From Blastocystis sp. Blastoise (Eukaryota > Protista > Bigyra: Opalinata): DNA of 64,000 nucleotides. The position numbers were made by a program, and so were the translations under genes. The stretch lies in the NCBI GenBank assembly GCA_039096225.1, contig JBBPEB010000005.1, forward strand, positions 1,116,001 through 1,180,000, in the 5' to 3' direction. The notes under the pieces are model-generated. The model was not told where the DNA came from. It saw only the letters and a list, made by a program, of their open reading frames with translations, and ran no database searches. Positions within the stretch are counted from its first letter, which is position 1. The number at the start of each line of letters is the position of its first letter. Positions 11,877 through 32,983 of the stretch are shown piece after piece.

Positions 11877-12329
11877 AAGCTCATTTTAACTTCAGACTGT
11901 TCCCTTGTATGTATATTGCTATTTTTTATTCTTTACCCATATTAACATTCTCCCATTCTCTAGCATGTATAGGTTCCTGCTCGTCCGTGGTTATAAGAGT
12001 CCTCTTCAGTCCATGTCAACAACGTCTATGATGTCAAACTGTTTTTAAAGTATATATGTATTTATTTATTTTTATAATTATCTCTTATCTTTTTATTTTT
12101 TATATTGCTGTAATATTATATGATAAAATACTTATCGTATATTCATTCTATCTATTATTAACTTTCTTTTTTTTTTCTTGAATTAGAATTCTAATTCATT
12201 TTATTATTTATTTTCATTATTTTTATATTTTTATTTATTATTATTTATTTATTTAGGTTGTTTTCTACTGTTTCTGTTGGTTATCTTTCCCTATGACTCA
12301 ACATCACCAAATTCATTTTTTTCTATTAG
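11877..12329 (+). ncRNA. Element-1 spliced exon array 1 (no ORF)
   Basis: GC-richer blocks bounded by AG/GT at about 11877-11907, 11973-12049 and 12257-12329. No continuous reading frame. Transcription is inferred, not shown. Confidence 0.4.
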
Positions 12330-15300
12330 GTATGTTTATTTATTTATTTATTTATTTATTTATTTATTATCTAGTTCTTCTTTATTTCTTCTTCTTACAC
12401 AAAATGATTCCTTCTTCTCTCTTCTTCATTTTCTTCCTTCTACACTTTTATCTCCTTATTTCTTCATCTTCTTTCTTTATTACTTCTTCCTATGCCTTGT
12501 CTCCAGCCTATATCCTTGTCTCTCCCTTTGATTCATTATCTTCCTCAGATCTTCATTTTTCTTTTATTTTTTCTTCTATCTAAATTCCTTTATTTTTCTT
12601 TTTTTTAATTATACCTCTCTCTTATCTTCGCTTCCCTTTTATATCACTCTTTCATTACTCTTTCTTAATCACTATTCTATTTACATTGTATTTCGTTATG
12701 TCTTTTTCTTTTATCCTGTTATCCTCTTCTCCTTATTCTATACTTCTTTTTCCTCGACATGTATTAGTGTATACCCTCCTTTTCTTCCTCTTCCTCTTCT
12801 TCTTCTTCTTCTTCTCCATATAATTCTTTGCTTTTTTCAGATCTTCATCTTCTTATTTATATTTATATCACTATTTATTATATATATAGTTCTCTTCTAT
12901 TATTTGTCTTCCTCCTCTTCCTTCTTTCTATTCTTCTCATACTTCTTCTCTCCTCCTTCTGATTCCCTTTTTTTTACTGCCCTATTTTCCTTCTTTATCT
13001 TCCTTCTCTCCTCTTTCTGTATAATTCTATCTCAATCTTCCTTCTCTCCCTCTCTATTCTCGTATCCATCTTTATCCTTATTCTTTTTCCATTTATTTCT
13101 CTCTGTCCCTGTCTATTTTATCTTATATGTCTCTTTCTACCTTCTTGTTTCCTTTTATATTTCCTTCTATGTCTCCTTTTCCACTTTATATCTACTTTTT
13201 CTTCTCTCTCTCCTTCTCTCTATTATTATATATTCTTATGTTCTAGTTATCTATTTTCTATTTTTATTTCTATCCTTTCATTCTCTATATTGTTATATCT
13301 ACTTCTATTTTGTCTCTTTTCTTCTATCTTAATCTTCTATTTAATCCTTTTATTTCTTTCTATATATCTATATCTTCTTGTCTCTAACTTCTTTCTTAAT
13401 CTCTTTTATATCCTTCTATTTCTCCTTCTATCTCTCCTTCTTTCTCCTTTTCTATTTTCTTCTAACCATCTTTTTTTCCTATTTTTCTCTTTCTATCCCT
13501 ATTATCTCATTCTCTATCTTCTTCTATATTCTTCTTCTTTCATCTTCTCTCCTTCTTCCTTCATCTTTCAATTTCCTTCTCTATCTTCCTTTTATCTCAG
13601 CTACTCCTTCTGTCTCAATCTTCAGTCTTTCCTTTTCTTTCTCTTTCAACATCATTCTATCTCTCTGTATTCCTATATTTCTCTTCATATTTCTCTATCC
13701 TTATCTATCTCATTCTACCTCATTTATGTGTCTCAATCTCATTCTCTATTTCCTTCTATTTTCTCTTATCTACTTATATCTTCGTATATTTCCTTATATC
13801 TACGTATATCTACTTCTCTATCTTATTATATCTCCTTCTAACTTAATTTACTTCCTCTTCTTCTTTTTCTCCTTCTATCTCCTCTTCTATCTCCTCTTTA
13901 TTCTCCATCATCTTCTATCTACTTCTCTATCTCCGTCTACATCCTTCCATCTTACTACATCTCAATCCGCTTTCTCTCCTTCTATATCCTTTTATATCCT
14001 TTTATCTCTCTTTCTCTCTTATCCTATTTATTTTTCTTATTTCTATCCATTTCTATCTACTTTATCTTCTCTATCTCATTCTATTGTATCTATATCATTC
14101 TCTTATCTTTCTATCTCCTTCTATTTTTAATCTTTTCTATCTACTTCTCCTTCTCTATTTCCTTCTATTCACTTCTATATACATCTCATTCTTCAAATCA
14201 TTCTATATTCTTCCCTTCTTCCTTTTAACTCTTGCTATTTGTTTTTATTTTAATCTACTTCTCCTTCTCTCAACTTTTATCTACTTCTCCTTCTCTGTTT
14301 GATTCTATCTCCTCTCTATCCATATTTTCCTTTTTATTAATATTTATCTCCTTCTCTATATCTTTCGGTATTCTTCTATCTCTATCTATCTATCTATCTA
14401 TCTATCTATCTATCTATCTATCTATCTATCTATCTATCTATCTATCTATCTATCTATCTATCTATCTATCTATCTATCTATCTATCTATCTATCTATCTA
14501 TCTATTTATTTATTTCAATCCCCTCTCCCCTTCTATATATTTTATTACCTTCTATGTCTCTACCCTATTTCCCGTTTTCTTTCTGTCTCTTTCTTCTCTC
14601 ATATACTATTGTTCTATCTTTTCTTTTTTTATTCTTCTTTTTTTCTTCTTTGTTTTTTCTATTATACTTCTTTATCTTGCTTTGTCTCTCCTTCTCTCTA
14701 TGTCATTCAAATTATAATTCTCTCTATCATTCCCTATCGTTTTCTTTGTATGTATTTTTCTTTCTAATTTTTTTCTATATAAATTTATCTTTCTTGATAT
14801 TCACTTCCTGCTCCTTTTTTCTCCCTTCTTCGTCTCATCTTCTTTTCTTCGTCTTCCAATTCTATCTGTTTTCCTCCTCCTTCTCTATCCTTTTCAATTC
14901 CTCTCTACCTATCTTTATATTCTTTCTTTTTTATACACCTTCCCTACTCCTCTATTTCTCTTTTTATCTTTATTCTTGTATCTATTTTTATCTTATTCTC
15001 TATTTCATTTGATTTCTTTTGTATATCTCTCATTCTATATAGAATTCTATCTCTTTCTATCTAATTTCTTCTTTATGTCTCTCTTTTCTTCTTTCTTTCT
15101 ATTCATCTATTAGTGTATCTATCTATTTATATCTTTGTATTTTTTTTCTCTCTATCTATCTATCTATCTATCTATCTCTTTTATTTCTTTATATCTTTCT
15201 GTTTCTCTATATATGTTTCTTGTTTATTCTTCTTTTCTTTTTCTTTCTCTTCTTCTTCATTTTCTTGTATATCTTCTTCCTATTCTTTATCTTACTTTTC

Positions 15301-15800
15301 TTTCTTTTTTTCACCTCCTTCCTTGTCTCTTCTTCCTATTCTTCTTCTTCTTCCTTATCTTCTTCCTATTCTTCTTTTCTTCTTCTTCCTTATCTTCTTC
15401 TTATTCTTCCTTATCTTCCTTATCTTCTTATTCTTCTTATTCTTCCTTATCTTCTTATTCTTCTTCCTATTCTTCTTCTTCTTCCTTATCTTCTTATTCT
15501 TCTTCTTATTCTTCTTCTTCTTCCTTATCTTCTTCCTATTCTTCTTTTCTTCTTCTTCTTCCTTATCTTTTTCCTATTCTTCTTTTCTTCTTCTTCCTTA
15601 TCTTCTTCTTATTCTTCCTTATCTTCCTTATCTTCTTCCTATTCTTCTTTTCTTCTTCTTATTCTTCCTTATCTTCTTCTTATTCTTCCTTATCTTCCTT
15701 ATCTTCTTCCTTATCTTCTTCTTATTCTTCCTTATCTTCCTTATCTTCTTCCTTATCTTCCTTATCTTCTTATTCTTTATCCTCTAATCCTCTTCTCTTC
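12330..15800. repeat. Polypyrimidine (C/T) low-complexity tract, cargo of element 1, with imperfect TTCTTCCTTATC-type repeats at about 15330-15780
   Basis: The plus strand is nearly G-free. The minus strand reads as broken E/K/R/D/I-rich sequence. Confidence 0.85.
14381..14505. repeat. (TCTA)n tetranucleotide microsatellite, about 30 units
   Basis: Direct inspection. Confidence 0.95.
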
Positions 15801-31000: not shown

Positions 31001-32580
31001 AAAGTGGAGATTGAGGGAGTCACGAGATGATCACATGATGAAATATCTAGAATCTTCTATATATCTGGATGTACATCGAAACTATAAATAAGTATTTATA
31101 TAAAACCTATTATCATTATTATATATAAGTGCATAATATTAATTAGAAACAAAGGATTAAAAAATATGTTATCATATAAATACCATATATATATATAATA
31201 TAAATAATATACTTTTTATTCTTATAGTAATAAGTAAGTTGTTATTTCGAATGTATATTGTAAGAATAAATGACGAAAAGAAATGATACATCAGGTAACA
31301 AAATAGCTTGAATCTATAGATTGATAATTAATAGAATAATAAACTAAAAGATAATTATAATAATAATAAATAAATTTACTTGAATATTCTATTATCTATA
31401 AATCTTCACATATTTATATCAATTGAAATAAGTTCAATAGCTATTCTTACATATAATTCTAATCATAAAACAAGTTGTATCTCATATTCTAAACATATAT
31501 ATATATATATATATATATATATCAATGAATAGATATAGATATAGAAACTAATATTCTTATAGTTTTTGTATATATACTAATAAACTAAAATATAATTATA
31601 ATTAAACGTATAATAATAAAGATTATAATATATAATAATATATAAACATATATATACTTGATTGAGTTCCACATGTTCTAGAAGCAAAGAATATAGATAT
31701 AGAATAGGTGATTCCAGGAATAAGACCTAATTTATCTGCATAATTCGTTATATTAATATGAGAACCAACTGGAGTATTATAACTATATATATAATAATAA
31801 TATATAAAATATAATATATACCCTCCATAATCTAAGAATAAATGTTTATTAATAAAAACCCATAATCCATTATTCGTTTCAAAATCTATAAATTGATCTG
31901 TTCTATTCTCATATCTATATATATAATAATAATATTATATAAATATAAAATAATAATATACAAGAAGAATAGATTTGTTTTCATAGTAAATTAATATTTC
32001 TTACCAATATATTCTTCTATTGAACTTAATGCATATCCTCCTTTTACATCTGTTAAAGGAAAATATGTAGGACTAGAAGATATAAAAAATTATAGAATAT
32101 ATATATATATATAAATATATATATATATAAATATACGAGAAATAGCAACAAAAGCCCGAATATTATTATCACCATAATCGTTCACTTTATCACATACTGT
32201 TTCTACTCTATCTTCTTTTGAATATAAATTTGAATATATATATCTATATAAAAAAATATAATAATAATAAATATAAAATATATACTTTGGATAATTTGAA
32301 GGTTGTTTCGTAATAAAATTATCTGTATAATGAATAATACAATCACGAATAGCAAATCCTTTCTCATCTATATATATATAATATATAAATGTTATATATA
32401 ATAAACAAATAAATAAATTCTTATATTAATAATATAATTAAATAGATAAAAATAAATAATTAAATATATATAAATAAACATATATATATACAAACTATTT
32501 TACAACTGATATCGTATTTGGTATTTGAAAATATCAGAGAAACCACAAGATTCAAGAATGGAGTAAGAAATAACTTTTCT
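28025..32580 (-). pseudogene. Captured intron-containing gene fragments (cargo of element 3), including a fibro-slime/PA14-like domain at about 31657-32075
   Basis: Spliced YENRTDQFIDFETNNGLWVFINKHLFLDYGG/YNTPVGSHINITNYADKLGLIPGITYSISIFFASRTCGTQS. Preceded by YFPL...Y*FT with an in-frame stop, and a frameshift further upstream. Confidence 0.7.
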
Positions 32581-32717
32581 ATATAATATATAAATTGAAA
32601 ATATATATAAAATATGAATAGAGTAACTAAAAATCAAATGAATATTTTTGATAGGAAAAGAGAAAAAAGAGAAAATGTGCCAATGCAATATAAAATTAAA
32701 TAGATACATCTATATAC

Positions 32718-32983
32718 GCTCTATATTGTCTTGACTTGTTATTTAGAAGAAGTACTGACGAGAATAACCAAGAAATCTAAGAGAATAAAAAAAGAAATGT
32801 AATAAAATACCTTATAATAAATAAACCCACAAGTCTCTGTTATGGACCTTTCTAAAACTAGTCAAGGAGAATGTCTGAAAGGAAGAGGATATCCAGAATC
32901 GAAAACCTATAAGAATGACGTAAAACACTATGATAAATTTTATAAATAAATACTAACACATTATGAACACTGCTTAGAAACAT
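32718..32983 (-). ncRNA. Element-3 spliced exon array 1
   Basis: AG/GT-bounded exons homologous to 24461-24900 (shared CAGAYATTCTCC and TATAAG/GTATTTTATTACATTT). Confidence 0.45.

Follow-up and report, generated by a model that had tools for sequence, protein, structure and literature searches.

The maize transposon En/Spm has a single 5' promoter, an untranslated first exon, transposase open reading frames (ORFs) within a long first intron, and many short, alternatively spliced 3' exons. A second point of comparison is offered by host genes of small nucleolar RNAs (snoRNAs), such as GAS5 and UHG, which are spliced noncoding RNAs whose exons are less conserved than their introns. Here, we describe three elements of the CACTA superfamily, E1, E2, and E3, in a stretch of 64,000 nucleotides (nt) of Blastocystis sp. 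Blastoise (assembly GCA_039096225.1, contig JBBPEB010000005.1, positions 1,116,001 to 1,180,000 of the forward strand). This whole stretch is referred to below as the window; its GC content is 22%, and the assembly comprises 33.34 Mb in 34 contigs. Each element carries, near both of its ends, an array of short exons whose splice signals appear to be selected in the absence of any conserved reading frame. There is, in our judgment, roughly an even chance that these arrays make up the untranslated leader and trailer of this CACTA clan's transcription unit, with exons that are selected to be spliceable and kept when the interior of the element is exchanged.

The elements resemble En/Spm in having CACTA termini, a 3-bp target site duplication (TSD), and subterminal repeats, the last seen at the 3' ends of E1 and E3. 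A Transposase_21 enzyme and a second gene are encoded on one strand in a relative that bears a transposase, and derivatives with internal deletions still have short exons near both ends. The differences concern the 3' exons, which encode TnpA in En/Spm, whereas here they lie past the stop codon of the second gene and have no conserved frame. The second gene also differs, as it encodes a PHD-finger protein with no similarity to TnpA.

Pack-CACTA elements and Tgm-Express1 of plants are nonautonomous CACTA elements with foreign, intron-containing interiors, and their captured exons can be spliced into chimeric transcripts (PMC6379663, PMC1947982). The elements described here are likewise nonautonomous CACTA elements with a replaced interior. 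With respect to the criteria for Pack-CACTA elements, a Pfam scan detected no transposase (Transposase_21) in E1, E2, or E3, and the interiors have exon-intron structure and ORFs without a Pfam match. In Arabidopsis, however, the sequence common to Pack-CACTA relatives is limited to about the last 325 bp (PMC6379663), whereas every derivative here keeps modules of 1.5 to 1.7 kb with dedicated noncoding exons, and the host is a stramenopile gut protist rather than a plant. The modules kept in every derivative, the noncoding and freely evolving 3' exons, and the stramenopile host set the clan apart from En/Spm and Pack-CACTA. Within Blastocystis, human-isolate strains have introns of a fixed 30 bp, whereas those of sp. 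Rus-B are longer and more variable, and the tortoise Blastocystis genome paper gives only overall transposon percentages, without mention of CACTA elements (PMC12129017).

The arrays share with GAS5 and UHG exons that evolve faster than introns, conserved splice sites, and the lack of an ORF. They differ in that the introns are 46 to 55 nt (array 2) or 34 to 138 nt (array 1) long and that no Rfam family matched at an E value of ≤0.1 over positions 10700-20096 and 20133-33300. In addition, the introns are conserved to the same degree as other AT-rich parts of the elements, and the contrast arises because the exons undergo AT↔GC turnover rather than because the introns are under added constraint. 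A host gene for snoRNAs or other small RNAs was ruled against because of the negative Rfam result and the shortness of the array-2 introns.

Splice signals and exon sequence in the arrays

In the orientation of its GT..AG introns, each element consists of a terminal inverted repeat (TIR), a short-exon array (array 1), a variable interior, an AT-rich stretch, a second short-exon array (array 2), and the other TIR (Table 1). This cassette arrangement had been proposed in a first-pass annotation of the window, and we find it in all three elements. The exon coordinates given there agree with ours to within 1 nt, and the sizes listed for the internal array-2 exons of E2 and E3 (51/51, 53/53, and 44/45 nt, following a first exon, x1, of 110/111 nt) are exact. 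The exons assigned to array 1 are also found, to which a third exon that had been overlooked in E2 and E3 must be added. The idea of one array design common to all three elements holds for the layout but not for the sequence, as no similarity is detectable between the arrays of E1 and those of E2 and E3. Array 1 of E3 is homologous to that of E2 (74% identity to E2 24520-24886). The arrays lie about 0.5 to 1.1 kb inside the element ends (about 1 kb from the TIR for E2 array 1), and the subterminal repeats sit between array and TIR, i.e., outside the arrays.

The 3' array was aligned for 20 of the 48 E2/E3-type copies in the genome, representing seven subfamilies. All 18 splice-site bases (the 16 GT/AG bases of four introns and the x1 acceptor) are invariant in the 20 copies, whereas variation affects 67% of the columns in exons and 40% of those in the interior of introns. 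At the intron rate, 18 invariant columns would arise by chance with a probability of about 1e-4, and at the exon rate with one of about 2e-9. Thus, the retention of GT/AG sites first noted between E2 and E3 extends to all 20 copies, far beyond chance, when splice sites are set against introns as the first-pass annotation had suggested. The donor context AAG/GTATNT is nearly fixed, with an almost invariant AAG on the exon side, and the acceptor reads TATAG/. Of the four array-2 introns, one keeps a branch-like TTAAC motif.

Exons are less conserved than introns in both arrays, with identities of 68 to 75% versus 83 to 87% in array 2 and, among four subfamilies, 55 to 60% versus 69 to 74% in array 1. 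Differences between A and T are equally common in exons (10.4%) and introns (10.6%), so that the excess in exons consists wholly of AT↔GC changes. Polarized exon changes are balanced (55 AT-to-GC versus 62 GC-to-AT), and, counted per AT site, exons show AT-to-GC changes about 2.4 times more often than neighboring introns do. In all seven subfamilies, the GC content is about 40% in exons and about 10% in introns. Because the A↔T rate is equal, the exon turnover balanced, and the composition steady, the pattern is not simply faster decay of GC-richer DNA. The simplest reading is that the splice signals and the base contrast between exons and introns are selected, the exon sequence being otherwise free. 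This argument uses only the exon/intron contrast within the arrays; the divergence between the interiors of E2 and E3 was dropped as a neutral yardstick, the interior being patchy (8 to 30% divergence).

On sequence evidence, the array exons are under no coding selection. Their lengths vary by numbers that are not multiples of 3 (x1, 109, 110, or 111 nt; x3, 53 or 54 nt; x4, 42, 44, or 45 nt), and the summed length of x3 and x4 is 95, 97, 98, or 99 nt, depending on the subfamily. The joined exons have no shared ORF, and the longest ORFs beginning with ATG (37 to 75 amino acids) differ in position and frame between subfamilies. Three transposase-bearing copies have stops in every frame of the joined exons. 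The ratio of nonsynonymous to synonymous differences (pN/pS) is 0.5 to 2 in every frame of every exon, and in six of the seven subfamilies, the best frame has no fewer stops than shuffled exons. Single array exons gave no Pfam match; the joined-exon model was not searched for homology. An exon-chaining gene finder, which overfits AT-rich DNA, was used only to locate real coding pieces.

The invariant sites, the pN/pS values, and the stop counts back the earlier proposition that splice sites are retained without a conserved ORF. The fallback offered with it, that the arrays are decayed small accessory genes with some synonymous-looking differences, does not agree with these values, the frame-shifting lengths, or stops as frequent as in shuffled exons. 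The two checks suggested for it, dN/dS and a search for a copy with an intact ORF, gave no purifying signal in any frame and no shared conserved ORF among the 20 copies read.

Downstream of array 2 is a 19-nt block with 43 exact and 5 one-mismatch copies genome-wide; its reversed control has 0. Of the 20 aligned copies, 18 carry the block unchanged (loci L023 and L036 differ), and the adjacent exons differ by 25 to 40%. The block is possibly a signal for 3'-end formation or for protein binding. A motif resembling it occurs in E1 near 18780-18800.

Differences in intron content among copies suggest that the array splice sites are used in vivo on the array strand. A 35-nt GT..AG segment within x1 is present in L006, L007, L027, L036, and the three transposase-bearing copies and is precisely absent from E2 and its 100%-identical copies, the E3 group, the L008 group, and L023; on either side of the segment, L006 and E2 are otherwise nearly identical. 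Two introns at the start of the 3' module (described below) are kept by L023, at least partly retained by E2, L028, and E3, and precisely absent from the transposase-bearing relative. Furthermore, L023 (on contig C17) lacks, at about its own position 3,370, an 877-nt donor-to-acceptor segment of the PHD-finger gene of the relative L013 (contig C23), as if it had been copied from an exon-skipped mRNA. Such clean intron removals are the expected product of recombination with reverse-transcribed spliced RNA. A polyA-selected gut metatranscriptome run contains 19% of the sequence words sampled from E2, which hints that some part of E2 is expressed in an animal gut sample. One further candidate RNA run contains 33% of the sampled words.

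End modules, interiors, and transposase-bearing relatives

The 5' module, about 1.5 kb in length, comprises the TIR, the subterminal region, and three or four short exons. Those of E2, L023, and L028/L030 are 85 to 90% identical over the first 1 kb, beyond which the leader exons have diverged. The 3' module, the last 1.6 to 1.75 kb, has an identity of 75 to 92% and is common to all sampled subfamilies and to the transposase-bearing relative. In this relative, it starts in the small exon that contains the stop codon of the PHD-finger gene, which places the trailer exons downstream of a stop. The start of exon x1 coincides exactly with a conserved polypyrimidine-TATAG acceptor and thus implies a splice partner upstream. 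From this arrangement, the 3' array looks more like the trailer (3'-untranslated) part of a longer transcript than like a gene of its own.

Between the modules, the interiors are unrelated to each other in pairwise comparisons of whole elements, apart from those of E2 and E3, so that the variable interior of the first-pass annotation is borne out across the relatives. E2 and E3 share an intron-containing gene piece without a Pfam match, the E3 copy of which has decayed (pN/pS of 0.89, 5 stops). The interior of L028/L030 is a Ser/Asn-rich ORF, that of L023 is the PHD-finger gene alone (the clan's own second gene), that of the transposase-bearing relative consists of the transposase and the PHD gene, and that of E1 is a G-poor tract. 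The interiors are joined to the modules at (ATT)n or (TA)n tracts, which belong to the introns adjoining the modules.

The AT-rich stretch upstream of array 2 had been described as a spacer. It is present, but it is more than that, being conserved among subfamilies and starting with two more small exons and introns. In E2 (20950-20140) and its homologues, a CCCCTGG block and a GGGGGAATTTC block lie about 60 nt apart; they occur in most subfamilies and partly in E3. These blocks may be a promoter, a terminator, or a binding site.

The relative (L013) is 12.1 kb in length and has CACTAC termini, a TSD (ATT), and two near-identical copies elsewhere in the genome. Its two genes, an open frame of 758 amino acids that scores above the cutoff of PF02992 (Transposase_21) and a second one encoding a PHD finger, share their strand with the arrays. 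Genome-wide, there are more than 50 transposase loci of the CACTA superfamily, in several families that are 24 to 54% identical. A ciliate-type code (TAA/TAG read as Gln), which was raised by stops that align with CAA or CAG, was rejected, as transposase frames of 758 to 1,618 amino acids are open in the standard code.

Ends, copies, and coordinates of the elements

The termini, the TSD, the transposase of the relative, and the subterminal repeats place the clan of E1, E2, and E3 in the CACTA/En-Spm superfamily. Short inverted termini of the form CACT(A/G) were found in the three elements, the 12.1-kb relative, L023, and L028. A blastn search for TIRs was dominated by low-complexity matches. 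The genome contains at least 40 matches to the E2-type 3' end and at least 40 to the E2-type 5' end. Three other copies are 100% identical to E2 across a 640-nt 3' probe, and eight further copies of E3, among the loci compared, are 94 to 98% identical. Each end of E1 has at least 35 genomic copies with an identity of 93 to 99%.

E1 looks like a recombinant between two copy groups. The 5' end of E1 (10751-12340) matches, at 99% identity, a group in which the 3' ends are only 93% like that of E1 and the 3' region is 41 nt longer. The 3' end of E1 (17990-19165) matches, also at 99%, a second group in which the 5' ends are 95% like that of E1. E2 and E3 stand end to end, with 4 nt between the TSD of E2 (TAA, 25927-25929) and that of E3, so one element appears to have inserted almost exactly at the terminus of the other. 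At the 3' end of E3, the tandem duplication of about 217 bp repeats the terminal CACTAGTAGGCA motif (motif starts at 25937 and 26154), leaving two candidate 3' termini.

Table 1. Positions of the elements, arrays, and associated features (window coordinates unless a contig is named)
Feature	Position	Strand	Description
E1	10751-19165	+	8,415 bp; nonautonomous CACTA element; TIR CACTATGGACATTTT
E1 TSD	10748-10750 and 19166-19168		AAC
E1 array 1	11877-12329	+	Exons 11877-11906, 11973-12049, and 12257-12329, each AG/GT-bounded; read from E1 sequence alone
E1 array 2	18042-18650	+	Exons 18042-18173, 18328-18386, and 18451-18500, last from 18589; read from E1 sequence
E1 3' subterminal repeats	18933-19141		Three ~73-nt units, inside the TIR
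E2	19289-25926	-	6,638 bp; nonautonomous CACTA element; terminus CACTAYCAGGT; TSD TAA
E2 termini			CACTACCAGGT and CACTATCAGGT
E2 array 1 (putative leader)	24352-24837	-	Exons A 24837-24743, B 24705-24651, and C 24512-24352; introns of 37 and 138 nt; upstream intron of 63 nt at 24900-24838
E2 array 2 (putative trailer)	19500-20072	-	Exons x1 20072-19963, x2 19910-19860, x3 19807-19755, x4 19708-19665, and x5 from 19609; introns of 52, 52, 46, and 55 nt
E2 3' module	19289-21070	-	Stop-codon exon of ancestral second gene, two introns, AT-rich stretch, array 2, 19-nt block, terminus
E3	25937-33216	-	7,280 bp; nonautonomous CACTA element; TIR CACTAGTAGGCA
E3 TSD	25934-25936 and 33217-33219		ACT
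E3 array 1	32500-32906	-	Exons A 32906-32811, B 32776-32718, and C from 32578
E3 array 2	26560-27077	-	Exons x1 27077-26967, x2 26915-26865, x3 26812-26760, x4 26713-26669, and x5 from 26612
E3 3' subterminal repeats	25933-26347		Two ~217-nt units, inside the TIR
Invariant 19-nt block	19472-19490 (E2), 26476-26494 (E3)	-	Downstream of array 2
5' module with 831-amino-acid transposase gene (four sites)	C2:81087-93155; C8:2200919-2215444; C15:1037723-1052212; C17:856651-868576		9 to 13 kb apart, same spacing pattern

Readings of the arrays

If the arrays are leader and trailer exons of the clan's transcription unit, replacement of the interior between the modules would give rise to nonautonomous relatives, with some rearrangements apparently copied from spliced RNA, and this would leave the cassette appearance. 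Splicing would serve RNA processing, export, expression, or the escape from silencing of intron-poor foreign RNA, a benefit that would apply to element transcripts whatever lies between the modules. Alternatively, introns downstream of a stop codon could provide dampening based on RNA decay. Of the interpretation given in the first-pass annotation, spliced noncoding RNA encoded by the elements, the spliced noncoding segments are supported, and the small accessory gene is not.

Several observations weigh against the leader-and-trailer reading. E2-type array 1 is absent from the 12.1-kb autonomous relative, whose transposase gene has its ATG 2.6 kb away from the 5' end, with opposite-strand ORFs in between. 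The E2-type 5' module faces, in four of its copies in the genome, an opposite-strand gene for an 831-amino-acid transposase; these sites may represent a composite or a differently organized autonomous family. The interior of E1 appears to be noncoding, so that the term untranslated region would not be literal there, and a transcript with four or five introns past its stop codon would ordinarily be subject to nonsense-mediated decay. The AT-rich DNA that separates the last small exons of the second gene from array 2, about 800 nt in length, carries no exon or intron-loss signal, and array 2 could therefore be a separate transcript. Finally, transcription, its strand, its start and end, and the splice junctions are all deduced from sequence, and selection may be restricted to autonomous masters, the arrays being retained passively in young derivatives.

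This last possibility can be stated as an explanation in its own right, in which the arrays matter, if at all, only in autonomous masters and E1, E2, and E3 are young deletion or replacement derivatives that carry them because recombination breaks occur in simple repeats of introns located deeper in the element or because transposition requires about 1.5 kb per end in cis. Copies within a subfamily are indeed 93 to 100% identical and too young for splice sites to have been lost by drift, the interior junctions are of the simple-repeat type that it expects, and the 3' module is common to the transposase-bearing element. However, seven subfamilies that differ by 25 to 44% in their exons have kept all splice sites and their composition, which indicates an old and continuous constraint in the lineage that carries the arrays. 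The position of the subterminal repeats means that the arrays are not obviously the transposase-binding region, and no autonomous partner with E2-, E3-, or E1-type arrays on the transposase strand was found among those sampled, a second autonomous element on contig C23 included. We consider such hitchhiking unlikely. Slightly less probable still is that array 2 and, separately, array 1 each produce their own short, spliced, polyadenylated long noncoding RNA with a regulatory or antisilencing role, from a promoter in the AT-rich stretch. The lack of an ORF together with selection on splicing would fit this, as would conserved GC-containing blocks in the AT-rich stretch upstream of array 2, an E1 without any protein-coding interior, and the E2 words in the polyA metatranscriptome, from whichever part of the element they come. 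Against it, a first exon would not need the conserved acceptor at which x1 starts, freely drifting exons would be unusual for an RNA that acts through base pairing or structure, and no Rfam family was matched.

A decayed accessory gene, either a TnpA-like helper or the C terminus of the second gene, intact only in an unsampled master, appears improbable to us. One frame through x1b to x4 gives alignable peptides and is fully open in L021 (0 stops, P = 0.036 before correction), some stops fall where other copies have CAA or CAG, and the module directly follows the coding sequence of the second gene. Yet pN/pS is 0.8 to 0.9 in this frame, the frame is not kept between subfamilies, given the summed lengths of x3 and x4, and the three transposase-bearing copies have stops in all frames; moreover, had the ORF been the only target of selection, its decay would have taken the splice sites with it. 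Splicing of an inserted element out of host pre-mRNA is known for maize dSpm and Ds, and donors near one end of the element and acceptors near the other could soften insertions in the same way. E1 is inserted in the last codons of a RING-finger gene, and the arrays offer several donors and acceptors in one orientation. However, the last trailer exon has no donor and could not be rejoined to a host exon, the arrays lie well inside the ends rather than at them, and a series of internal exons and introns would be unnecessary, so that we regard a self-removal device as very improbable.

For gene annotation, the roughly 50 to 100 array loci will yield spurious multiexon models in the genomes of tortoise Blastocystis. 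A bolder interpretation than leader and trailer exons, and one that we consider possible though rather doubtful, is that the arrays are sequence-free splice tags, i.e., placeholder exons selected only for being spliced, which would mark any RNA of the element as a legitimate cellular transcript. RNA tagged in this way, whether it derives from the element's own genes, captured host fragments, or a noncoding interior, would be exported, expressed, or spared by defense. If this is true, the splice tags would be a portable RNA-licensing cassette carried by a DNA transposon. If the leader-and-trailer reading is right, selection would act on splicing itself, apart from any coding or sequence-specific function of the RNA, with the splice signals and the base contrast fixed and the exon sequence turning over. 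The arrays would then be a clean natural case for what splicing does, be it export, stability, or protection from genome defense. They would also explain how interiors can be exchanged freely while processed RNA is still made, which bears on Pack-type gene shuffling outside plants.

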